Shown here in pieces: positions 14,368-62,892 of a stretch of DNA of 64,000 nucleotides. This stretch comes from Trichosphaerium sp. ATCC 40318 (Eukaryota; Protista; Tubulinea). The translations under genes were made by a program, and so were the position numbers. The DNA lies in NCBI GenBank assembly GCA_038496445.1, contig JALMLS010000255.1:434001-498000 (forward strand). The letters are read 5' to 3'. Numbering within the stretch: the stretch's first letter is position 1; each line of letters begins with the position of its first letter. The notes below the pieces were generated by a model. The model worked only from the letters and a program-made list of their open reading frames with translations. It did not search any database and was not told the origin of the DNA.

Positions 14368-14990
14368 CAGACAATGATAAATTGTTTGAGTGGATAGAAC
14401 CAAAAACCGTAAAGCGAAATCCTTTAAATGGTGCCATATCATTTTGCGCTTGGTTTTTAGACGACGTGCCTTTGAAACCAAAAAACTACCGTTAGAGAAA
14501 AGCCAAGACTTTCTTTTTTCAGGGAGCAAAGACGAAAACAGCCACAACAACATGGAGTATCGGCTTGAACTCTGTTTGGCCTTTATTGTAGAGGTATCCC
14601 ATTCGTAGGTGATAAGGGTTTACTGTTACCTCGTGCAGCTCCGTTGTGGTTTTTTTGTCTTTCTTCTCTCCACCAAATGCGTACACTAGCCACTAGTAAT
14701 CCTTTATAAAGGCTCTTACTCTTATTCCTTGTGAGTTCTTTGCTGCAACTTTGTTAGTTTTTGTCTGTTTACCCTCACTGCGATTGAATAGCGCAAGTAT
14801 ACCTCACAAGCACTAGAAGTTGGTCACTATTTTTTTACGCAAGAGTCCTCTGCTTACCACTCCACTGTTAGCGCTCTTCCACTGGTATAGTAGTACTATG
14901 CGCGTAGTAGCGTAGAAAGTATAGACATACACATTCTCCCGAAAACGGACATGTTGACTTGCACTTAAACGGCTTTTTTGCGTCTCGCTT
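14368..14990. repeat. Dispersed repeat, copy A (inverted relative to 62107-62892)
   Basis: For example, 14581 ctttattgtagaggtatcccattcgtaggtgataagggtttactgttacc is the reverse complement of ~62635-62684. The core is near-identical and the flanks more diverged. Confidence 0.9.
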
Positions 14991-33878: not shown

Positions 33879-34929
33879 ATGGAACAACACGGGAGTGACA
33901 TGTTGTCGACACTGCCAGACGAGTTGCTGTTCTTCCTGCTTTCGTTTTTAGACATCATTGGGTCTCTTGCCTTTACGTGCAAGAGGCTAAGAGCCGTGGC
34001 CAGGTGCTACAGTACGACCAGAACGAACAGTTGCAAGGTTTGCTCACTAATTTAGACCGGTCCATCACTATGAGAAGCGGTGTCCTAAATTACCCAGTAC
34101 TACACTGGGCTGTAGGTACGTGGCGCATACCCACAAATCGTTTTTGAAGCTCCTAACTTTTTGTAAAGACGTTTTACACATGGCAGAGGTTAGCCAAGAT
34201 AACCTCCTATGCATGTTGGAGAACATGTTCTGTGCCACAACGGCACAACCCAAAGATTGCTGGTTTGTTTGGCAAAGTACTCGCTTCATTTCTCGGAAGC
34301 TCATTCATTTGCGGTGCTTTATCCCAGGTGAACATTTCCCAGGCACGCCTCTTTGTTTGTTTTGTTTTTTTTTTGATTTTCGAAAACCGATTTTTACAAT
34401 CGTTTTTTTTTTTTTTGTTTTTTTTTTTTTGAGTAGTTGTATTCAAGGAATAATATTTTGCGTAGGCAATCGGTATTCAATCGCTACATACATCAAAATG
34501 TACAACGAAAGGTGTAAAATAGAGCGCGCCCGCGCGTTGTCACTCATGTATCTGGTTGAAAGACAAGGATTCCTTGTTTCATCAAGCGTAATGAACATGT
34601 GCACTATTGGCCCAATAGTATTGTACAGGACGAATGTGGTCCTTGGAGACCTATATGAGGCGTTAGTAGAGCTTGATAACCACATGTTTGAGCAATCATA
34701 CAATTGCTTTGAGGGTTTTTTTTTTAGAGTTGGTGAAACGTACACGTTGGGCGCTCTTGTACATGCTGATTACATCGTTGCAATCATGGACATGAATTAT
34801 TATCAAGAATATCTATGGGAAAACCGCCGATACCCATCTGAGATAGTTTCAAGACGTCAATTTGAGGAGACACTTTTGGTAAAATTTAAAAGATACCGGC
34901 CAGGTCGAGAAAAAAAAGACTCTGAATAA
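33879..34929 (+). CDS. F-box protein, multi-exon
   Basis: MEQHGSDMLSTLPDELLFFLLSFLDIIGSLAFTCKRLRAVARC F-box; long terminal exon to the stop at 34929. Confidence 0.7.
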
Positions 34930-39236: not shown

Positions 39237-41051
39237 TTAAGATAATGAAACAAACTTATGAACCCTAAATACAGGTTCTTTCGAGTACTTTTTAACGATC
39301 CCAGAATCGAGTTTAACTGAGTTTGGTGTTTCAGTTTCTGTCCATTTGAATTTCTGAACAGAAGCAGCCACAACTTTGTATAGAACTGTCATCGCGATTC
39401 TCTCTCCAGGGCATCTTCTCAAACCTTGGCCGAATGGGTACACTCTTTGACTAGGCTTTTCCCATCGAGTTGGATCAAATACCATAGGTTGATCCCACAT
39501 GTCACTGTGACACTCTGCTTGATGCAAAAACAGTAAGATAGCCTTTGCTTATTGTTAAATCATTAATAGATTGGTAGCACTTACTCCCTTCGGTATTGTG
39601 TATCCTCCTATTTGAACGCTTTCTCTGGCTTGGTGCGGTGTGAGAAGGGGTACCACAGGCTTGATGCGAAAAAGTTCTTGGATAAAGTAGTGTAGATACG
39701 TGATTTCTTGTAAATCCTACACACATTACAACTTGAAAAGCCCTTTCAACAACTAACCTTGAGAGACATCAAGTCTATATTTTTATCTCCAATTGCAACT
39801 CTAAGTTTTTCTTGTATTCTTTGATGTTTTGCAAGCATTGCGAAAGCACTAAGGAAGTAGTCAATCCTCAAGAAATTTCTAACTAAAATGCACATGCGTT
39901 TGAAGTGTGTTGGAAGTTGTGTCAACGCCTGCAGCAACAAGCTCGTCCAGAAAACCAATGAGCTCTCCATCAGTGATATCAGGTATGGTTGTTAGCAATA
40001 CGTCAAGCCAATGTCTCGTTTTATTAGGAGAATAGGTAGAACGTGCTTCCTTAATAAACTTCCCAAAGATGAAGTCTCTTCTTGTCACAACACTTTCGAT
40101 TTCCTTTACCTGAAGAACCATGTTATTTAAAGCATTGTAGTCTATTGCACTTACCCTATTACTCTCCAGGAAAGATAACATTGGAAATATGTCGCGTAAG
40201 AATGGCTCATCAGCAATTTTTATGAGTTTTATTGTAACTCCAAAAATGCCAGCCATGTCTTTATCTTGATTATTGTATGACTTAACGTCAAGTAACAAAG
40301 ACGTTATTGTATTGACTGTGAAAGCGTATGAGATATCTTTAGCTGTAACTTGTTGTTTATCTTGGGAACGTTGATTGAAAGTTATGAAATTGTCTTTGAT
40401 TACATTGTTTAGAACTCTATTGACTTGCTGTGTAAACTGTTAGGAATGATTGTATCGTACAATTCTCACCTTCATTCCCTTTTGAGAAGTCAATTCATTC
40501 TTGAATAAAGTTCTGTACCGTGTGTGGTTTGCATTTAGATTAGATAGAACGCACCCTAGAAAGGATTTAGAAATTAAGACAACATACGTTTGTTTGTCAA
40601 ACCTCCTTTTGGATCAGTTCTGTATATCATCTGAAAAGCATAAAAGTCCTCCATAGGTCTATCTGAAAGAACTCGTCTGTGTTTTATTAGTGCTTCTTTA
40701 ACCAATGATCCAGAGAGAAACACAAGCTGAAAAGACTAAGTTAAAGAAATCATATGATACAAAAAAAACCAAAGGGATGCTACTTTTTTCGGTCCGAAGT
40801 CCATGCTGTAAATATCACCAAGCTTTTTTCCGTAGTATACAGCAGTGCTAGTACGTTTTAATATAAATGTATCGAAATTAATGTACTTACTCCACCATTC
40901 TCTTCGGATCTGACCAAAGATGAAGATGCCCAATTATTGGTAGGCTTATTGGACTTGGAGGCAGTTTGTCTAATCTTCGTCTAATGTTCTTGTACAAAGT
41001 AGACAACGCTATTGATACTATCACAGCCGAAAACAAAACTAACCCTATCAT
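39237..41051 (-). CDS. Cytochrome P450
   Basis: N-terminal anchor + LPPSPISLPIIGHL, I-helix AAGVDTT, ExxR (ELFR), FDPTRW and heme motif PFGQGLRRCPG. Confidence 0.93.
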
Positions 41052-41689
41052 TACGTCCCTTTTCTGGACACGTGTATCGTTAAATAAACGTTTGAAAAAA
41101 TGGTTGATATCAGCATTTAGTTGTTAAAGTAAGGTTCATTGAATGTTCGGAGCCAGGAACAAAAGATAACTACTATGAGAGCTCAAAGATTAGAAAAGGA
41201 ATAAGCAAGTAATTGTAAATGCTACATTGTTGAATTGATGATAATCACGTGAAACAAGCATGAATATTCTGGAAGATTATTAGAACATCAAGCCAAGGAA
41301 GTCGTTGTGTTAAATTGTCTGAAAAGAAAAAAAAGACAAAGAACAGGCTGGATAAATGTATCTATTCTACTTTGTAATTTGCTAGCAAGGAGAGGTATTT
41401 ACTACGATGCCACTCTTGCCTCTAGTCTCTCAAATTGTCTCGTCTTCAGGCGAAACTTTCTAAATGGGAAGAAAAAATTGCTCGTTTTTCACTTGAAACA
41501 GCATCAAACAGTGAAAAGTAAGTCATCAAAATTACTACCGCTGAGAAGTTTAAAGTACAAAGAGCAGTGCTTGCATAAGGTAAGAAAAAACAGCAAGTAT
41601 TCTTACCTGGTATGATGAGGATGTACAACTATAACAAGTGCTATTTTAAGGACGACAAAGGGAACGCAAATAAAAGGTTGTGAAAAAAA

Positions 41690-44104
41690 TGTTTAATTTA
41701 TTTATCTATCTCTACACAATGGGATTGCCATTCTTTGACACTTGGTATTGGCACCAAAACAAATGTTTGGTGTGTGGGTTAAGTGATCAGGACACCATCT
41801 ACTTTGATGGACTGTACTGTTTAAAATAGAGAAAGTTGCAGTCAATACTTTGACATACCCATGACATTCAAAAGAGTCGTATTGGCTTTGAAGATGTTTA
41901 CTCACAACAATATTTAACATTTTCCTTCCTTCAACCGAGCAACCCCCCTCTCCAGAGGCACGGGAAACTCGAAACTTTAGAAGTGATTAAGTTCTAAAGT
42001 CCAGCCGCAGTGATTGAAAGAATTCCTACTGAAAAATACTGAAGCTCTTATATAGTGGCTTGCCTACCAACCCGTTACTCTTTGAAATTACAGGCATGAT
42101 TTCACAAGCAAGTGAAACCAAGTACTGAATTGCCCCTTTCCCTACACTTGCACAATAACATTTTAGATAACAATTGAATACACTACTCAGTGCCAACACA
42201 CTGTGGGTAATACGTTCGGTATGATACTTGGGAGTAACCCTGTTCTCTGTCAAACGTAACCGTATATATATGGTGCCCCAACTTTCATTGTGGTTGGATG
42301 TGAGTATATTCAGTGCCATCCCTCCAGGTACTTAAGAGTATTGTTCCCTTTAGAGGTAAAATGAGAGAATAAACACACTTGCACAATAACATTTTAGATA
42401 ACAATTGAATACACTACTCAGTGCCGACACACTGTGGGTAATACGTTCGGTATGATACTTGGGGGTAACCCTGTTCTCTGTCAAACGTAACCGTATATAT
42501 ATGGTGCCCCAACTTTCGTTGTGGTCGGATGTGTAGTATATTCAGTGCCATCCCTCCAAGGTACTTAAGAGTATTGTTCCCTTTGGAGGTAAAATGTATT
42601 GAATGTGTTTATTCTCTGCAACATACAAGGACTGAGCCCTTGTACATTGCTGTGCATGTCAATTCCTAAGGTGTAAGTTAGTTAACGATAAACTTATAAT
42701 CACGACTTTGAATACCTCAACTAGAATCTGTCTTGCCAAAATCTTGGTACCAACCTAAACATACCCCCCTTATCCCAAGTTTGCTCCACCTGTGTATTGA
42801 ACCAGAACTGGAAACACCATATCTACTTTCCTATAAAACATTGGTCAGTCATACATTTATGTGATTTTGTTGCCCACTGAGGGCTTCAATTACATACCTT
42901 TATAATACCACCCTTCTCTCCCTAATTGATGTACTTGGCTTGGGTGCCTTTCCATCAATTAGTTCTTGAGACACATCGATGTCTATCCCACAAGTACTTG
43001 GACATGTGCCTTTCCTTGTTGGGTAAAACTTGATGAGCTGCTGGATGACATGGCACCTCTTAGGGTACCTGCCAATTCATGATGAACCTATGACTCGATT
43101 AGCATTTCTACACTTCAAATGAGTGTTATAATGATAGAAGAGGACATATGTTAATACATACATAGATAGATAGTTGTCGCCCACTGTGGGCTTCAACTTC
43201 ATGACTGGAGGTCTCGATTAACATTTCTACGCCTCAAAATGTGCGTTATAATGATAGAAGAGAACCCATTCTCAGGGTGGACACAGCATTAAAGCTGTAG
43301 TACCACTCACTCAACAACCAATGAGTAGTGTCATTGATGGATGTACTAAGAGACAAGCTAAACTCGCCCTTTTCTATCCTTCACAAAGTGTTCTGTAGTT
43401 ACAGAGACACAATTGTATCACCTCAGACAGGAGGTGCTCGAGCCAGTCGATTACCACTGCCTATGCCATGTTTTTTACGCATTTTACATAGGTGGCTTAT
43501 GTGATAGAAGACCCAACTACAAGGGGTAAAGAGAAGCAACTTCTAGGGGCACACACTACACAAAATAATTTGTGTTTGGTATTTTTTTCTTTTTTTTTTT
43601 TTTGTGTGACTTGAAGTCTTTCTTCTTTTATGCTATATTAGGCTACACGGTTGTAAGACTGAACCTATTGAATGAAAATATCGAGTTTTCACGGCACATA
43701 CAATACCAATGTGACTCTCATAGCTCGCTGCATGCACGTCGTATTCTGTAGTTGGGTTTTAAAAAAACCAACACAACTTATTGGTTGTGCCTCTGTGCTT
43801 TGTGGTGCCTTTTGTGGTTGTACTTGCAAAAAGCAAGGGAGATTTTCTTCTCTGTCACAGACGCCCCTTACATACAACAAATTGGTGTTTTCGAGAGTCT
43901 ACTACTAGAACCGAGCATTCTTTATTTACTTTTAGAGTTTACACTTCACTGAAATATCTATTTTAAATACTCAAATATGGATAATGCACATTTCCAAAAC
44001 GCCACAAACCCTTGTGCTAGCTATTTTCGTGACTTGAGTACCGTTTCAGCGATGTTTTGGTTCGTAAAACGTGCAACTAAACGATAACTACTTTTTTCTG
44101 CTTG
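41690..44104. mobile_element. Non-coding repeated element, copy 1 (~2.4 kb; includes a ~525 bp segment absent from copy 2)
   Basis: High-identity direct repeat of 55550-57459 with the same ends in unrelated flanks. (TTTA)n left end, internal poly-T at ~43582-43603, no credible ORF, no TSD seen. The repeat is certain; mobility is inferred. Confidence 0.75.
42144..42596. repeat. Internal tandem duplication (~220 bp x2) within element copy 1
   Basis: 42144-42363 and 42375-42596 both run acacttgcacaataacattttagataac...gaggtaaaatg. Confidence 0.95.
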
Positions 44105-44899
44105 AATGCTCAAGAAAAACTATATTGCTTTGAAAACGTTACCGCATCGTGTAAAGAATAGATTCAAACGCTTTTTTGGTTGTTCACGGAATGCTCGAAA
44201 ATGAAAATTATGCCATAAAATTCAGAAACTGTGAACATAATCCTATTTTAAGCATTTGCTGTGTAACTGCAATCAAAACTATCACGTGAACAAAGCTAAA
44301 AATAGTGAAAAACTTCCGCCTTTGCTACCACCTGTGTAACGGAGAGGATATAACAAGAGGAATGGTATACGTAAGTTAAGTTTATACATATTAATAAGTT
44401 ATAGGTTGCTATATAGCAATACATCCCTCTCACAGAGCCATAGTCTCGGGTCATTAATTGAATATCTCCATGCTACAACCATACAAGAGCGCTTCTAAAT
44501 GGTAAAAACCTGTACATTAAGGCGTAGCATGATTCAACAGGGTCAAATGAAATGCCAACTGCTTCCCACTAAAAACACCACCCTTGGTACATAGTCTGTG
44601 GTATTCATTAAATTCATGAAGGTTCTCGTTGTTGTCATATTGAAAAATCAAGTGAGCTTTACTATAATTATTAACGTTGGGTTTGCTCAGCATATTTTGA
44701 TTGTAGTTGAGCCACATACTGTCTAATCATCACCAAGAAGGCAAGTGAATTTGTTCGTCACTTGTTTGAGGTAGTTTTATAAAACAATAGGGTCAAAAAA
44801 ACTGTCGTAAATCTTGAACACAATTAAAAGTTGCACTACCAATTTGCATTGTTTTCAAGGAACCCAAAACTAACTCTACTGACTTTACCTTTATGTTCT

Positions 44900-45501
44900 T
44901 TCAAACGTAAAGAACGATAATGAGCTCAAAGCGTATGAGATTGTAGCGTACTACGATTATGGATTAGGATGCTAATATCAGCTCTACACGAAAACTCCGT
45001 CATGAGCGCGATGTAGGTGAGGCTAAGTTGACTTATAATTATCGTTAGGATAGAGAGGATTTCAATAATGTTAGCCTTTGACTGTGAGAGTATACAGATA
45101 CAATGTGCACTCAAGAACAAATGATAGAAGGTTTATGCCCTTGATTAAGCATCAGTTTCCTAGATGTTACAAGGCGTATGATAAGAACGGTTACCCTTAT
45201 GAACGTGATTTTTATATCAAGGGAGAATCTGAAAGGAGTATGAGAAACAACAAGCTAGTCTACGAAAAAGCGAGGAAGTAATTACGAAACAAGACGATGA
45301 GATTAAGGAAAAAAAACAGAAAGAAGTCAAAAAGAAAAAAAAAGAAACAAAGAAAGTTGAAGACGATGACCTTGATTTGTCCTTTAGCTCCTCTGACGAT
45401 GATGATGACAGCTTATTAGTGCATCTTGGTGATTTAGACATAGATGAGTCCAAGGTAACAATGGACGATCTGGATGCTATGCTTGATGAAGCTCTGAAGT
45501 G
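44900..45501 (+). CDS. 3' part of a hypothetical gene with Lys-rich/acidic C-terminus (possibly disrupted)
   Basis: KEYEKQQASLRKSEEV..KKKKKETKKVEDDDLDLSFSSSDDDDD..MLDEALK* ends at 45501. An in-frame TGA lies just upstream (45230-45232) unless it is spliced out. Confidence 0.35.
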
Positions 45502-48762: not shown

Positions 48763-51700
48763 ATGTTTAATAAACAACGCTTCGCGTTTGTTGGTTTTAA
48801 AGCGAAAGACAGTAATAAACTAAAAGATGCAATAAAAGCGCAAGGAGGTCTTGTTGATTACCTAGTATCGTCTAAGGTACCATTTACAAGCGGCTATAAA
48901 TAATAGTGTATTAACGTATTTCAAAACAGACATCAACGGTTGTTTGCACTCCAGACGCCATTAACTTACACAGCCTAAAAATTAGCTCCGCAAAGAGCAA
49001 AGTACGCGTCTTTTTACTTTTACCAGTTATTAACCTCGTCAAGGGCATACCAATCGTTACCCGTAACTACATAGAAGACAGCATCAAGAATGGCACACCA
49101 CAAAATAAGGAACTTTACTCTGTCACTGCAACAGCCGCAGCTACAAAAAGCATATCAAATCTAGTACGTTAATGATAAAGACTCGCTTTGTAACAGTTTT
49201 TAGGCACTTGACGATGAACCAGCTAGAAAACGTCTCAAAACGGACGAAAAAACATTAGATGCAATGGATATTGACACGCAGGATTCTAACGGTGAAAACA
49301 AGGGAAAAAAGGTTGGTATCACGAAAGTTTTGCAAAACTTTGTTTCATCCCATAAAATTACTTCAAGTTGAGCTAATCACGCTATTCAAGGTTGTCAAAA
49401 GGCGAAAAATTGTAAATAAAGGAAAATGGAACACTGCACGTGTTTTCATTTCGTCTACATTCAAAGATATGCATGGTACGCGAACAGAGAACAACACAGA
49501 TTTTTTTTGTTTAGCTTGCGTTTTTTGACTCTTTTTAATAGGTGAACGTGATTACTTGACTAGATATGTATTCCCCGAGCTTCAAGAGCGTTGTAATCGG
49601 TACACCTGACATACTCTTTGCATTTTACTGTAACCTGTTTTACCGTAACTTGTTTTTCGGTTAATTTTCTTACGTCGTTCTTAGCATCCGTGTTCACGTC
49701 CACCCTGTCGATTTACGCTGGGGTGTCACTGCAGAAGATACAGAAAATGCCCTAGAATTATGCCTCACAGAAGTTGACAGTTGTCGTCCCTTCTTTATTG
49801 GTATTCTGGGCGAGCGTTACGGTTGGCGCCCTGAAAGATACAGCGTAAGCCTATTTTTAAACGCGTATTTCAAGAGTTTCTTATTTTTTCGTTAGGTTCC
49901 TGATGAGCCTCGCTTCGATTGGTTAAAGATTTTGCCTGCCGGCAAGTCAGTAACGCATATGGAGATAATATACGGTGTGCTTCAAGACCCAGAAAAGAGC
50001 CGACACGTGATGTGTGTTAGGGATCCTGTAAGTGTTTGTCAAACTAAATAATCACAGTTTGTCTGTTGCTAATAAGCCTTTCTAGAATTTTATGCAAAAC
50101 GTCCCTGGGTCTCACATTGCTGATTTCAAAGGAGAGAGCCCTGAGCACCAATACGAATTACAAGAACTGAAAGAGGAATTAAAGACAAAGTGCAATGTTT
50201 TTGAATACCCTTGCACATGGCAAGGTGTTGTTGATGGTAAACCAATGGTATCTGGACTTGAGAAGTTTGGTGAGCATGTTCTGGAGACCATGTGGACACA
50301 ACTACAAGAAGAGGTTCGAGAACTTTTAAAGCATGTCAGTTACCGTTTGCTCATCTTTTTTTAATTAGTTTGGCACCGGCGCTGAGTCTCAAGATCCGCT
50401 TCAAATTGAGCGGGATTACCATGATAGATTTATTGAGTCTCATTCACAGCACTTTGTTGGTCGTGAGGCGCTTATTAACACAATTAAAACATACGCAAAT
50501 GATACTTCTGGTAGTAACAAACCAATGGTTATTATTGGTGAACCTGGATCAGGTATGTTTATCTAATCCTTTACAAATTTTTTGACAATAAACTAAAAAA
50601 CGTGATTAACTTTTTTCAGGTAAAACGTCTCTCGTGTCGTACTTTTCTCGAAAGTACGCCGAGGCTATGAAGGCTAGGGATGATGTTTTTGTACTCATAC
50701 ATTTCGTTGGTGCTGCTCCGGACTCAACGAATATTCGTCACGTGCTGGATAGACTAGTTCGTGAAATAATAATCGGTACTTTTTTTTAACCTTTTCTCAC
50801 AGTATCTAACTACGGTTGTTTTAGCGTATGACATTGACGATGTCAGTGTACCTCAAGAGTACAAAGAACTCCAATCTCTTTTCCTCAAGCTCATTAAAGA
50901 GATTGGAAGTGATGAACAACATGCTGATAAACCTAGACTTGTTCTTATTATTGATGCACTGAATCAACTTGTACGATCCTTTTCTACGTCAATTAGACAT
51001 TTATTTTAAATGGTATTTTGCGTTAACTGGTTAAATAGGATGACACTTACCATGCCCACTCTTTGGATTGGTTGCCAGAGCAAATCCCTGAGCGTGTTCG
51101 CATTATAGTATCAACATTGAAGGGAGACGTTTATGATGCTCTCAAACGTCGTGAACGTCAAGAACTAGTTGTTGGCGCTCTTTCAGATATGGTAAGTAAC
51201 TTTTTTAATGTATGTAGATTTTAATATTCGTACGCTTTAGGAAAGAGAAGAAATTGTACGACAAACACTGTGGGAGTACAGGAAAAAATTGGATAAAAGA
51301 CAAATGCGTCTTCTACTGTCAAAGGCTGAAGCCTATAAACCGTTGTATCTCATCATCACGTGTGAAGAGTTACGCGTACACGGTGTTTTTGAAGAGTTGA
51401 CAAACAAGATAAAGTCTCTTCCTGGCACAGTACCAAAGCTTCTTGAAGAAGTTCTGGTTCGTCTTGAAACAGATCACGGCAAGAAAGTTATTCGTGATAT
51501 TCTATCACTATTGACAATCTCTCGTGGTGGTCTTCTTGAGTCTGAACTTTTGGGTGTACTTGGAGATAGAAGCGGTCCAATGCCACAGTCCGCGTGGTCT
51601 AGGATATACCGTGCTGTTAAGAATTACTTGCGTCCTCCTGGTGAAAGTGGTGAAGGTAATGAGCAGAATTATTCATCTTTATCTTCTTATTTGTTTTTTT

Positions 51701-54700
51701 AAGGTGTACTGGATTTCTTCCATCAGCAGATGCCTAAAGCTGTAAAATTAAGATACCTTACTCCGGATAAATCGTACACATCTTCGTCTCACCTCAAACT
51801 GGCCAAGTACTTTCACGAGAAAGCTGATCCAGCCCTTGATGGTACGCTTTTTTTTAACCTTCCTCAGTTGTTCTGACGTCTTCTCTTAGGATCATGGGAA
51901 GCCGGTCACAAGAGAGGGTTAGCTTTCACTGCGTATCATATGGTCTACGGTCGCGATTGGAAATCGCTAAACACTGCACTGTGTAACCTTGGTTTCATCG
52001 AATCGAAATGTGAACTCGGCATGACATATGATTTGGTTGCAGATTATCTGTTAGTAGCAGCACATAAAGAAATGATCAACAATGCAAAGGTGCGCCCTCA
52101 AATACTTATCATAGCACCTTGTTTACTCCAAGGAAATATTATCTAAGTGCCGTGAATACAGTCACTGATTTTATTTTTAGATTACAAAGCCAATTGTTGA
52201 GTACCAGCGTTTTGTTCAAGCGCGTGCACATGTTTTATCCAAGTTTTCTGATATGACATTCTCAATGGCTGCTGCACTTCCTAATAGTTCTATTGTCGCT
52301 AAGGAAGCACATCATAGATATTACCAGTCACGAAGGGAGTCGCGACCTTGGTTGAAGTGGACGAATAAGCCAACTTTGGCTAATCCTTGCATCATGACTT
52401 TGTCTGGACATCAATTTGTTGTCCGTGATGCTTGGCATTCGCCTACTGAAGCCAGAATTGCTTCAGTATCGTACGTGTTTTGAGTTTGTTTATTTCCAAC
52501 ACGCTTTGCTTATTTTTTTCTTTTCAGAGATGATACGTCTGTTAAAATATGGAATTCTACTACTGGTGAAGAGTTGTCGTCTCTTAAAGGTCACAACAAT
52601 AGTGTTGTATGCTGTGGGTTCTCCACAGATGGTAAAACACTGGCTACAGGCGGATATGACAAGACAATAAAGGTGAGATTTTAGAAAAAAAGGAAACCAA
52701 TGTGAATCTTTTCTCATTTTTCTAGCTATGGAACGTTGATACTGGAGCCGAAAAAGGGACAATTAGAGGTCATATTGGCGTAATTACTTGCTTGAACTTT
52801 TATATTGGTGCAGATAGAAAGGAGTATTTAATGTCAAGCAGTTATGATAAATCTATAAAGCAGTGGGATCTCAGCACGCTCACTGAAGTCAAATCGTTCG
52901 TAAGTTTTTTTTTTTGCAACAGTTAACTGAAGAAGTGTATTGCGTCTTGGCTTATTTTCCTCTTTTTTTGTAGTTGGGTCATAAAAAGAGAATCACATAT
53001 ATATCTACTCACGGAGAGTACCTGGCTAGCGGTGCAGAAGACAATACAATTATGATTTGGTCATTAAAAACAGGCTCTGCAATTCGTACCTTAGAAGGTC
53101 ATACAAACACCATTAATTCTGTTGCATGGAGTCCAGATGGTAAGCAACTAATTGCTGCATCTGAAGATAGAACCTTAACAGTTTGGAACACAATATCATG
53201 GCTAAAAGAAAAGACACTTACAGTAAGTAATTTTCAACAATATTTTCTTCTTCTTCCTTCGACTGAGCTAACTTCTCTTGTTCAGGGTCACAAAGATGGT
53301 GTTGCTTCCGGTAGTTTCTCACATGATGGCACAAAGATCATTTCGTCGTCACATGATAACGTCATCTCAATCTGGGACGCTAAAACAGGTGCAGTCAAAG
53401 CCGGTTTGATTGGTCATACTGGTACTGTGTTCAAGGTATGTTATTCACTTTATTCTGTTTTTCTTTATTCATATCCTTTGAATTACTTCTAATTGATATT
53501 ATAGGCACGGTTTACACCAGACGATAAATTCATAGTATCATGCAGTTTCGATAGAACTGTTAAAATTTGGGAAGTGAGAGACAAAGTAGAAGTTGTTGGA
53601 CACTCTGCACGTGTCCTAGCGTCTAGCTTCTCCCCTGATGGCAAACTATTGGCAACAGGTGCTAGGGATAAGAGTATTAAAGTATGGTCAGTTGAGGACG
53701 GAAAGGAACTGAGAATGTTCACTGGTCATGCGTCAAATGTGTTTGGCGTTGCTTGGTCATCTGACGGAAAGTTTATTGCATCATCCTCAAGAGATAATAC
53801 AACAAAAGTACGTATCCTTGTACCCTTGAAATAGTATCTAACGTATCACATTAGATATGGGAAGTAGTTACAGGACGATGCGTAACTTCATTGAGCGACC
53901 ACAGCAACATCGTTTCTGGTAAGTATTTTGGGTTTTTTTCTTGTTGAAAAAAAAAACCAATCTTCAATTCAAGGCTCTCAAAAGCTTTGAAATAAATTAT
54001 TGCTGGTGTTCGTTTTTTAACTGGTCTATTGTCTAGATGTTGCTTGGTCTCCTGATGGAAAGCATATCCTAACTGTCAGTTTCGATAAAACAGCTAGAAT
54101 CTATGATGCTAGTAATCCTCAAGATATTACTCCTATTGGTACCTTATTTGGGCATCGTGCAGCGCTAAGGCGTTGCCGATACTCTCATGATGGTAGAAGA
54201 GCAGCAACAGCTTCTGATGATCATACAGTAAAGCTCTGGGCTACCCGTAAGGGAACGCTTAACTATGGCAAGATGTATGTAAAGGTTGCCACCTTTTCTG
54301 GTCATGCAAAGCCTGTAACTACACTTGCATTCTCTATTGATGATAAAAGGGTAATAACTGGTGGTGAAGACGAGATTTTAATTGTACGTCAACACTCGAT
54401 TGGAAGAGAAAAAGTATAAAAAGCGCTTTGTGCTTTTTTGGTTTTTCTCTTCTTTGTTTTGTAGTTTGTTTATTGACTTGCTTTTTTAGGAATGGGACGC
54501 TCGTAATGCAAGACAACTTGCCACTCTTAAGAAGCATACAGCAACAGTAACAGATGTACAATATACCTCTGATGGTAAATACATTTTGTCAGGTAGTACC
54601 GACAGTTCAGTCATTTTATGGAATACAGAGACTAAACAACCTGATTGCTCTTTTGCATGTATGAACAGGATATGTACTGTTTCATGTTCTGGTCGTCATC

Positions 54701-55549: not shown

Positions 55550-57459
55550 AAATGTTATATTTATGTTTATTTATTTATCTACACAATGGGATTGACATTC
55601 TTAAGAATGGAGATCACTGAGGCTTGACACTTGGCATTGGCACCAAAACAAATGTTTGGTGTGTGGGTTAAGTGATCAGGACACCATCTACTTTGATGGA
55701 TTGTACTGTTTAAAATAGAGAAAGTTGCAGTCAATACTTTGACATACCCATGACATTCAAAAGAGTCGTATTGGCTTTGAAGATGTTTACTCACAACAAT
55801 ATTTAACATTTTCCTTAATTCAACCGAGCAACCCCCCTCTCCAGAGGCACGGGAAACTCGAAACCTTAGAAGTGATTAAGTTCTAAAGTCCAGCCGCAGT
55901 GATTGAAAGAATTCCTACTGAAAAATACTGAAGCTCTTATATAGTGGCCTGCCTACCAACCCGTTACTCTTTGAAATTACAGGCATGATTTCACAAGCAA
56001 GTGAAACCAAGTACTGAATTGCTCCTTTCCCTAGCATAAGTTAGTTAACAATAAACTTATAATCACGACTTTGAGTACCTCAACTAGAATCTGTCTTGCC
56101 AAAATCTTGGTACCAACCTAAACATCCCCCTTATCCCAAGTTTGCTCCACCTGTGTATTGAACCAGAACTGGAAACACCATATCTACTTTCCTATAAAAC
56201 ATTGGTCAGTCATACATTTATGTGATTTTGTTGCCCACTGAGGGCTTCAATTACATACCTTTATAATACCATCCTTCTCTCCCTAATTGATGTACTTGGC
56301 TTGGGTACCTTTCCGTCAATTAGTTCTTGAGACACATCGATGTCTATCCCCCACAAGTACTTGGACATGTGCCTTTCCTTGTTGGGTAAAACTTGTTGAG
56401 GTGCTGATGACATGGCACCTCTTAGGGTACCTGCCAAATTCATGATGAACCTATGACTCGATTAGCATTTCTACACTTCAAATGAGTGTTATAATGATAG
56501 AAGAGGACATATGTTAATACATAGATAGATAGTTGTCGCCCACTATGGGCTTCAACTTCATGACTGGAGGTCTCGATTAACATTTCTACGCCTCAAAATG
56601 TGCGTTATAATGATAGAAGAGAACCCATTCTCAGGGTGGACACAGCATTAAAGCTGTAGTACCACTCACTCAATAACCAATGAGTAGTGTCATTGATGGA
56701 TGTACTAAGAGACAAGCTAAACTCGCCCTTTTCTATCCTTCACAAAGTGTTCTGTAGTTACAGATACACTATTGTATCACCTCAGACAGGAGGTGCTTTG
56801 AGCCAGTCGATTACCACTGCCTATGCCATGTTTTTTACGCATTTTACATAGGTGGCTTATGTGGTAGAAGACCCAACTACAAGGGGTAAAGAGAAGTAAC
56901 TTCTAGGGGCACACTACACAAAATAATTTGTGTTTGGTATTTTTTTCTTTTTTTTTTTTTTTGTGTGACTTGAAGTCTTTCTTCTTTTATGCTATATTAG
57001 GCTACACGGTTGTAAGACTGAACCTATTGAATGAAAATATCGAGTTTTCACGGCACATACAATACCAATGTGACTCTCATAGCTCACTGCATACACATCG
57101 TGTTCTCCAGTTGTGAAGTTGAACAAAAACCCAAAACACAACTATTGGTTGTGCCTCTGTGCTCTGCGCTGCCTTTTTGTACTTGCAAAAAGCAACAAAG
57201 ATTTGCTTCTTTGTCGCAGGAGCCCTTACATACAACAAATTGGTGTTTTCGAGGGTCTACTACTAGAACCGAGCATTCTTTATTTACTTTTAGAGTTTAC
57301 ACTTCACTGAAATATCTATTTTAAATACTCAAATATGGATAATGCACATTTCCAAAACGCCACAAACCCTTGTGTTAGCTATTTTCGTGACTTGAGTACC
57401 GTTTCAGCGATGTTTTGGTTCGTAGAACGTGCAACTAAGCGATAACTTTTTTCCGCTTG
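55550..57459. mobile_element. Non-coding repeated element, copy 2 (~1.9 kb)
   Basis: Direct repeat of 41690-44104. It lacks the copy-1 segment ~42144-42668 (junction at ~56033, ttcc(c)ta microhomology) and has a ~20-nt insertion at ~55602. Confidence 0.75.
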
Positions 57460-57479: not shown

Positions 57480-57680
57480 TAGTAATGCCACTGTTTTAAT
57501 AGCTCTGTTATTGAGTATAACCGACACGTACATGCTCAAACACCAGATATGTTGCTAAGTACTATAGTACAACCACAACAAACAGTTGCAAGGTTTGCTC
57601 ACTAGTTTAGAACGTTCCCTCATATTGAGAAGCGGTATTAGATTACCCAGTACTACACTGGACCGTAGGTACGTGTCCTG
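57480..57680 (+). pseudogene. Fragment homologous to the F-box gene at 33879-34929
   Basis: aacagttgcaaggtttgctcactagtttaga..gagaagcggt..ttacccagtactacactgg..gtaggtacgtg matches ~34026-34122, including intron-like sequence. Confidence 0.8.
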
Positions 57681-62106: not shown

Positions 62107-62892
62107 CAAGCGGGAGAGGCAAAATGCCGAAACGTGTAAGTGCAAGTCGGCATATCCTTTTCACGAGCTATGCTTTCTAGACTACTACGTAGAGTACTAC
62201 TATGACAGTGGAAGAACGCTAACGGTGTTAAGCAAGAGGAAACAAAACCGTTGTAGCGAGTAAATACTTCAGCGAGAAGCAATAACAGTAGTTGCAATGC
62301 CAATATCAATTGATGCACTTATAACGCGATACTCAATCTAATGCGCACAGCACTCTTTCGCACAGTACTCTTTCGCAATGTATGGACGAATGAAGTACTC
62401 ACAAAACTAATGAGTAATCTTGCGGAAAGAAAACAGTTACCAACTTCTAGTGCTTGTGAGGTATACTTGCGCTATTCAATCGCGCAGTGAGGGTAAACAG
62501 ACAAAAACTAACAAAGCTGCAGCAAAGAACTCACAAGGAATAAGAGTAAGAGCCTTTACAAAGGATTACTAGTGGCTAGTGTACGCATTTGGTGGAGAGA
62601 ATAAAGACAAAAAAACCACAACGGAGCTGCACGAGGTAACAGTAAACCCTTATCACCTACGAATGGGATACCTCTACAATAAAGGCCAAACAGAGTTCAA
62701 GCCGATACTCCATGTTGTTGTGGTTGTTTTCGTCTTTGCTCCCTGAAAAACGAAAGTCACGACTTTTCTAAAGGGTAGTTTTATGGTTTCAAAGGCACAT
62801 GTCTAAAAACCAAGCGCAAAAGGATGGGCACCATTTACAGTATTTCGCTTTACGGTTTTCTACTCAAAACAATTGTTAATTTATCATTGTCT
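62107..62892. repeat. Dispersed repeat, copy B (inverted relative to 14368-14990), with ~180 bp extra at 62241-62417
   Basis: Reverse-complement alignment to 14368-14845 (62420-62892) and to 14846-14990 (62107-62240). Confidence 0.9.

Follow-up and report, generated by a model that had tools for sequence, protein, structure and literature searches.

Degraded pieces of ribosomal DNA (rDNA) and of its intergenic spacer (IGS) that lie outside the rDNA arrays, the rDNA orphons, have been reviewed for the human genome (PMC6562748), and the spacers themselves are a source of non-coding RNAs, among them the spacer-promoter transcripts and promoter-associated RNA (pRNA) of mouse and Xenopus and the RNA polymerase II (Pol II) transcripts of the yeast IGS (PMC6562748). 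Here we describe a repeated element of about 2 kb without a long open reading frame (ORF) that shares traits with both. It lies at positions 41690-43735 of a 64,000-nucleotide stretch of Trichosphaerium sp. ATCC 40318 DNA, called the window below (C14:434001-498000, where C14 is contig JALMLS010000255.1 of the 70.3-Mb GenBank assembly GCA_038496445.1), which is eukaryotic, intron-bearing and has a guanine-plus-cytosine content of ~38%. Like an rDNA orphon, the element carries spacer sequence away from rRNA genes that has been multiplied locally and has diverged from the canonical spacer. Different from the orphons however, only ~800 bp of it are rDNA-like, these are fused to 1.2 kb of apparently unrelated sequence with an intron and a poly(A) signal, and the unit is apparently expressed as a spliced RNA of its own. 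With the spacer RNAs it would share an ORF-less transcript that contains spacer sequence in the sense of the pre-rRNA and starts near a conserved spacer element. Those RNAs, though, are made inside the arrays, mostly by RNA polymerase I (Pol I), and are unspliced, whereas the unit described here is situated among protein-coding genes and its RNA appears to be spliced and probably polyadenylated. What would be new relative to scattered rDNA and to RNAs of the pRNA type is a chimera outside rDNA that is spliced and has been multiplied as a gene-like unit.

We consider it somewhat better than an even chance (a probability of roughly 0.55) that the element is one of eight local, ORF-less chimeric units which consist in part of orphan rDNA spacer and are transcribed and spliced from the minus strand. 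A search of the whole assembly returned eight copies (named A-H) that are 88-98% identical and occur in both orientations, all of them between C14:345,982 and 517,297, i.e. within 170 kb of a single contig. Copies E and F are those of the window. An earlier note on this DNA had described 41690-43603 as a duplicated ORF-less element that ends at a poly-T run and recurs at 55550-56960. The ~2-kb ORF-less repeat is indeed present in the window, yet with eight copies on one contig it is no simple duplicate. Moreover, homology runs on for ~500 bp beyond the poly-T run, to 44104, and the second copy spans ~55566-57095 and lacks 42144-42674. The parts of the repeat are the following.

41690-43735, minus strand: copy E, the low-divergence unit, which would comprise the transcription unit and ~150-190 bp of upstream region
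55566-57095, minus strand: copy F, of the deletion type, without 42144-42674; its homology to E extends to 57459
42144-42674, unstranded: optional 530-bp segment made of two 231-bp tandem units, 42144-42374 and 42375-42605
43575-43603, unstranded: T-run on the plus strand (A-run on the minus strand), internal, with homology on both sides in 8/8 copies and in diverged relatives
43736-44104, unstranded: faster-diverging flank, version 1 in copies E, F and H, version 2 in copies A, B, C, D and G

Comparison of the window with itself aligns 41735-42144 with 55624-56033 at 98% identity and 42674-44104 with 56037-57459 at 95% identity. Across the eight copies the mean pairwise difference is 0.03-0.085 within the unit as compared to 0.23-0.39 just beyond either side (flank alignment), and the borders of the unit are marked by a sharp drop in identity at ~41690 and at ~43700-43740. 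On the right-hand side all eight copies are 95-100% identical across the T-run up to ~43735; from there similarity persists to 44104-44224 among copies E, F and H, and the flank of A, B, C, D and G is the continuation of a sequence that resembles rDNA spacer. Copies A and B are 93-100% identical in the core and 72-86% in the 3' flank, and the flanks, which can be aligned in part, group the copies differently from the core. This disagreement between core and flank groupings makes the copies a mosaic, as would arise if neighbouring copies had recombined or undergone gene conversion. The optional 530-bp segment is present in A, B, D, E and H and absent from C, F and G, copies A and B contain an additional module of 119 bp, and copy E has a private 22-nt deletion. 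Indel variants are common within the element, and its ends are ragged and specific to each copy. Upstream of copy C we also find remnants, 76-97% identical, of the sequence upstream of E on its sulfatase/P450 side (L033:2713-3738 versus L035:7-3962, at ~399.7-400.7 kb and 471.0-475.0 kb of C14, respectively), which point to a segmental duplication that was older and larger and is now eroded.

The origin of the right-hand part of the unit can be traced to the spacer that precedes the rRNA genes.

42925-43735, minus strand: rDNA-spacer-homologous part, ~800 bp, the right-hand part of the unit and its upstream third in the minus-strand sense

By blastn this part is 74-92% identical to positions 602-2475 of L029 (C572:1-3107), and a profile of the eight copies finds minus-strand matches at L029 566-2476 with E-values down to 1.6e-38 (nhmmer). 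In the same locus the 18S gene starts at L029:2998 on the plus strand (RF01960, 72 bits). As the profile match is opposite to the 18S strand, the minus strand of the window is the rRNA-sense strand. Judged by sequence, 42925-43735 is homologous to spacer (5' external transcribed spacer (5'ETS), promoter or IGS) located 0.5-2.4 kb upstream of 18S. This relationship is not restricted to one locus. A query of 301 nt (43440-43740) has relatives on more than 20 contigs, in many cases 5-12 kb away from where the contig ends, and on 14 of those contigs a full-length 5.8S match, in every case with a score of 27.8 bits and hence under Rfam's 42-bit cut-off, lies ~5 kb off and always on the strand opposite to the spacer match.

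5.8S-linked contigs: C34, C75, C123, C125, C166, C257, C46, C233, C572, C176, C177, C464, C469 and C592

The left 1.2 kb of the unit (41690-42900) was found in a search of the own genome only in the eight copies, apart from a piece of ~105 bp on three other contigs. A right part that is rDNA-like and a left part that is confined to the copies make the unit a probable chimera. No rRNA gene accompanies the copies here, given that no Rfam family reaches its gathering score within the 64-kb window, and the flanks of the other copies contain unrelated ORFs.

As to the rDNA itself, its units lie at many contig ends and are transcribed toward the end (the 5.8S-linked contigs listed above and C481), and C469 and C481 each contain two inverted 5.8S genes 14-16 kb apart. 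A search for TTAGGG repeats as a mark of subtelomeres gave three matches in the genome and was uninformative. Between several contigs, the spacers that precede different rDNA units are no more than 72-83% alike (L055-L068), while the 5.8S genes look identical, which indicates that the spacers are poorly homogenised except for short conserved islands. Two further repeat subfamilies (L014, L016, L018 and L019; L015, L017 and L020), each 89-98% alike internally over 2-3 kb, contain a 75-77% relative of 43446-43821 together with its continuation.

The rDNA-like part carries three hairpin modules and one conserved block.

43095-43141, unstranded: short hairpin module a, TCGATTA ... stem-loop ... 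TTATAATGATAGAAGA, with the stem ACAC/GTGT
43214-43261, unstranded: short hairpin module b, with the stem ACGC/GCGT as in the rDNA-linked copies
43447-43511, unstranded: long module (block 1), TCGATTACCACTGCCTATG ... CATAGG ... GATAGAAGA, kept in all rDNA-linked and dispersed relatives
43604-43700, minus strand: block 3, ATTAGGCTACACGGTTGTAAGACTG ... GAAAATATCGAGTTTTC, an island better conserved than any other in the family and a candidate promoter or control region

The short module is composed of TCGATTA(A/G)CATTTCT, a stem-loop and then TTATAATGATAGAAGA, and recurs in rDNA-linked spacers, as does the hairpin CCCACTG(N)GGGCTT; the module at 43447-43511 is a longer form of it. Its stem reads ACAC/GTGT four times and ACGC/GCGT seven times and is never broken, one pair being G-C in seven and A-U in four instances. 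The covariation of this stem is genuine, at the scale of a hairpin of ~50 nt, and since it is symmetric it carries no information on the strand. Block 3 is invariant or nearly so among copies that are ~75% alike overall; in L029 it is located 2.3-2.4 kb upstream of 18S, and a role as promoter would suit it. The hairpin arrays upstream of 18S in the same genome are close counterparts of this region: they are built from the same modules (TCGATTA ... stem-loop ... GATAGAAGA; CCCACTGTGGGCTT) and their stems covary. Different from these arrays, the element has three modules only, is found outside rDNA and includes them in a larger unit that is apparently transcribed.

What indicates that the unit is transcribed at all? 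Among public sequence runs the element occurs in small ones only, and their Logan contigs were compared with 40500-45500. The contigs of four runs cover 41689-43548 exclusively, with a word depth of up to ~160 there and of zero on the unique flanks. One contig of run X2 is identical to copy E including the 22-nt deletion and ends at 41689 without entering the unique flank of E. High depth next to bare flanks is hard to obtain from eight genomic copies, which suggests that the runs are RNA. On these contigs and on the eight genomic copies we base the following transcript features.

42666-42715, minus strand: intron of 50 nt in E-type copies, GTATTC ... TTAACTAAC ... CCTTAG, with the branch motif CTAAC
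56031-56078, minus strand: intron of 48 nt in copy F, as in deletion-type copies
41697-41702, minus strand: AATAAA, candidate poly(A) signal (TTTATT on the plus strand), kept in most copies, 8-13 nt before the coverage stops
42716-43548, minus strand: putative exon 1, a minimum extent given by the reach of the contigs
41690-42665, minus strand: putative exon 2 (3' exon), of sequence specific to the eight copies, where the depth of run X1 is highest

A contig of run X6 joins 42664 directly to 42715, and contigs of runs X2 and X3 join 42140 to 42715, so that three runs from two coded organisms bear a joint. Both joints are clean and have CT..AC ends, that is, GT..AG on the minus strand, and they correspond to removal of the same intron from two copy types. 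The joined forms of both are absent from the assembly even when up to three mismatches are allowed. GT, CTAAC and AG are kept in 8/8 copies, while the remainder of the intron belongs to the more variable parts of the unit, and an adjacent protein-coding gene has a comparable intron of ~70 nt (GTATGT ... CTAAT ... TAG). In addition, the depth of run X1, which is 5-17 at 42.8-43.5 kb, reaches 150-224 at 41.8-42.2 kb, as would be expected if a minus-strand RNA had been sequenced from a poly(A) library with 3' bias. Taken together, the GT-AG intron, the AATAAA and the depth gradient indicate that there probably is a minus-strand transcript.

Several points weigh against this interpretation. The library type of the runs is unrecorded, RNA being the guess of a tool for X1 and a deduction for the others, and the contigs show neither strand nor start nor end of a transcript. 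As for the joints, related strains might carry them in their DNA, as deletion variants or as processed copies. The 5' splice site GTATTC is off consensus, and because the copies are young the conservation of their splice signals says little about selection. Were the conserved block a Pol I promoter, efficient splicing and polyadenylation would be out of the ordinary. Finally, the left 1.2 kb may derive from rDNA as well, as the comparison covered spacer other than that downstream of 28S, in which case the copies would simply be fragments of rDNA.

An alternative proposal is that the element is an inert DNA repeat, in which orphan spacer fragments were spread by segmental duplication and made alike by gene conversion, the contigs stem from the DNA of related strains with an amplified element, and the joints are ordinary deletion variants with no dedicated transcript behind them. 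The unrecorded library type would permit this, and the remnants of a larger duplication beside copy C, the mosaic relationships of the copies and the frequent indel variants are all in keeping with it. We nevertheless think it unlikely, since a depth of up to ~160 that falls to zero on the flanks would require hundreds of copies where the assembly has eight, the contig identical to E halts at 41689 rather than running into the unique flank, and both joints have GT..AG ends and CTAAC on the same strand and remove one intron from two copy types.

A distinctly unlikely proposal is that the element is a non-autonomous transposable element, for instance the captured cargo of a Mutator-like or Helitron-like element that moved by local hops, and that its transcription is incidental. 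The element is a discrete unit without a long ORF, its flanks are unrelated, its copies occur in both orientations and relatives are dispersed on other contigs, as this proposal would have it. However, there are no terminal inverted repeats around E and no target-site duplication at the ragged ends, the A/T run is internal and hence no retroposon tail, the interval between E and F is occupied by a host gene of the NACHT-WD40 type rather than by gag-pol, and eight near-identical copies all lie within 170 kb. A test for DNA transposons, miniature inverted-repeat transposable elements and Mutator-like elements found no inverted repeat within 40500-45500 except the A/T runs, and the copies on C14 come with neither a transposase nor terminal inverted repeats nor target-site duplications.

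We also considered and rejected a number of specific element classes. That E and F form a pair of long terminal repeats (LTRs) of an LTR retrotransposon, or are solo LTRs, is contradicted by their interior, which consists of the host NACHT-WD40 gene without retroelement ORFs, and by the mixed orientation and irregular spacing of the copies. A minus-strand retroposon that ends at the A-run was dismissed because all relatives span the run. A non-LTR retroposon or short interspersed element does not fit either, as the element has its A/T run inside, lacks a tRNA-like head and keeps the intron in its genomic copies. A Helitron-like 3' hairpin at 43823-43837 consists of sequence specific to E, F and H, and the family continues differently there. 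The gene between E and F (50092-53831) is NWD/TEP1-like and has short introns.

To return to the expressed chimera that we favour, each copy would be a small minus-strand transcription unit that starts near the conserved block and the A-run (~43550-43640). Its exon 1 would bear the three spacer-type hairpin modules, a GT-AG intron of 48-50 nt would then be removed, and exon 2, which contains the 530-bp tandem segment in some copies only, would end shortly past the AATAAA at ~41690. The product would be an RNA of ~1.3-1.8 kb in which no ORF is kept from copy to copy. The copies would have spread by local duplication, and gene conversion would keep them alike. Which polymerase might be responsible is a matter on which the evidence points in two directions: splicing and a depth biased to the 3' end speak for Pol II, whereas the descent of the upstream block speaks for a Pol I promoter. 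The earlier note had thought of a novel long non-coding RNA (lncRNA) and in so far as an ORF-less RNA probably is made it was partly right, but neither the strand nor the ends it gave find support.

The most economical view is that the element is a young, locally amplified and expressed orphan without a demonstrated role. It would then mean that spacer modules of rDNA can be recruited outside rDNA into a non-coding unit that is apparently expressed and spliced and that multiplies locally. One may go further and propose that the eight copies form a family with a function, whose spliced and polyadenylated lncRNAs display hairpin modules of the 5'ETS/spacer type in trans. The RNAs could serve as decoys or guides for the factors by which these modules are recognised upstream of the rRNA genes; rDNA silencing and pre-rRNA processing are two examples of where they might act. 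We hold this extension to be improbable. If it were true, a gene cluster outside rDNA would be linked to the control of dispersed rDNA units at chromosome ends. An RNA of this kind that acts on rDNA would represent a new kind of trans-acting spacer RNA; if it does not act on rDNA, the element is ordinary orphan rDNA sequence.

The abundance of hairpins is what had led the earlier note to a large structured RNA of the plus strand. The short palindromic stems that it listed are present in the sequence, and the element does fold better than dinucleotide shuffles (20 shuffles each, on halves of ~950 nt), though it does so on both strands. The minus strand folds better, with z-scores of -7.3 versus -3.4 on the plus strand for 41690-42650 and of -3.2 versus -2.4 for 42651-43603. 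In 200-nt windows the mean z-score inside the element is ~-0.9 on the plus and ~-1.4 on the minus strand, that of the flanks ~0 or above. Much of the strong minus-strand folding is due to inverted 14-mers where the optional tandem segment joins the rest of the unit, a segment which is missing from three copies, and the listed stems are perfect palindromes and thus neutral with respect to strand; the preference for the plus strand finds no basis here.

Among the pairs predicted by RNAalifold from the eight copies, compensatory changes amount to 0/280 and 1/116, a test of low power as the copies diverge by 2-12% only, and the covariation terms are positive, i.e. against the fold. Copy differences that had been said to keep pairing are one-sided wobble changes and are no commoner than changes that break a pair: on the plus strand 21 variable pairs are kept versus 38 broken, on the minus strand 47 are kept versus 31 broken, counts that argue weakly against the choice of the plus strand. 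The eight copies show no covariation in favour of a large fold, an outcome which the earlier note itself had named as speaking against it, and the claim of a large structured RNA is not supported. There is no sign of a large conserved fold, covariation being limited to the short modules inherited from the spacer.

That an RNA of ~1.9 kb, ribozyme-like or belonging to a retroelement, is made from the plus strand and ends at the poly-T run is therefore largely refuted, and we give it next to no credence. Plus-strand folding does beat the shuffles and there are many local palindromic stems, but 3/8 copies lack 530 bp of the proposed fold, the poly-T run is internal, and the splice and poly(A) signals are on the opposite strand, in addition to the strand and pairing results above. 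The element has no hallmarks of a retroelement. At an E-value of up to 5, Rfam yielded just two chance-level matches to bacterial small RNAs, both on the A-run, and ARAGORN found no tRNA-like gene. No covariance model links the element to an Rfam family, a group I or II intron, a ribozyme or a giant ornate RNA. Its hairpin-rich third consists of modules of the rDNA spacer. The excess of hairpins thus reflects inherited spacer modules of ~50-65 nt and inverted and tandem rearrangements at the DNA level rather than one large conserved fold. Hairpin repeats of a spacer can mimic the signatures of a non-coding RNA, and the false lead of a giant structured RNA is hereby removed.

Coding potential is similarly lacking. 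The longest ORFs in the element have at most 97 amino acids, and indels interrupt their frames from copy to copy. None is shared in conserved form by the copies, nor is one conserved across the junction region in the genomic sequence with the exons unjoined, and the five longest ORFs gave nothing above the Pfam thresholds. A coding exon in the rDNA-linked relatives was ruled out, too, because the open frames differ between copies.

The flank of copy E overlaps a repeat of another kind.

43940-44107, unstranded: separate dispersed repeat of ~165 bp, matched more than 40 times, at 73-86% identity, across many contigs

Elsewhere this repeat often forms tandem dimers, and it is found also at ~57298-57459 and in L021-L028. 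Beside copies B and C its orientation is opposite to that beside E, F and H. A direct repeat of 120 bp (34004-34122 and 57559-57675, 86% identity) lies just past copy F and near the sulfatase gene. Copies E and F are both enclosed by a pair of inverted repeats of 450 bp (14403-14850 and 62412-62859), which are 94% identical and 47.5 kb apart.

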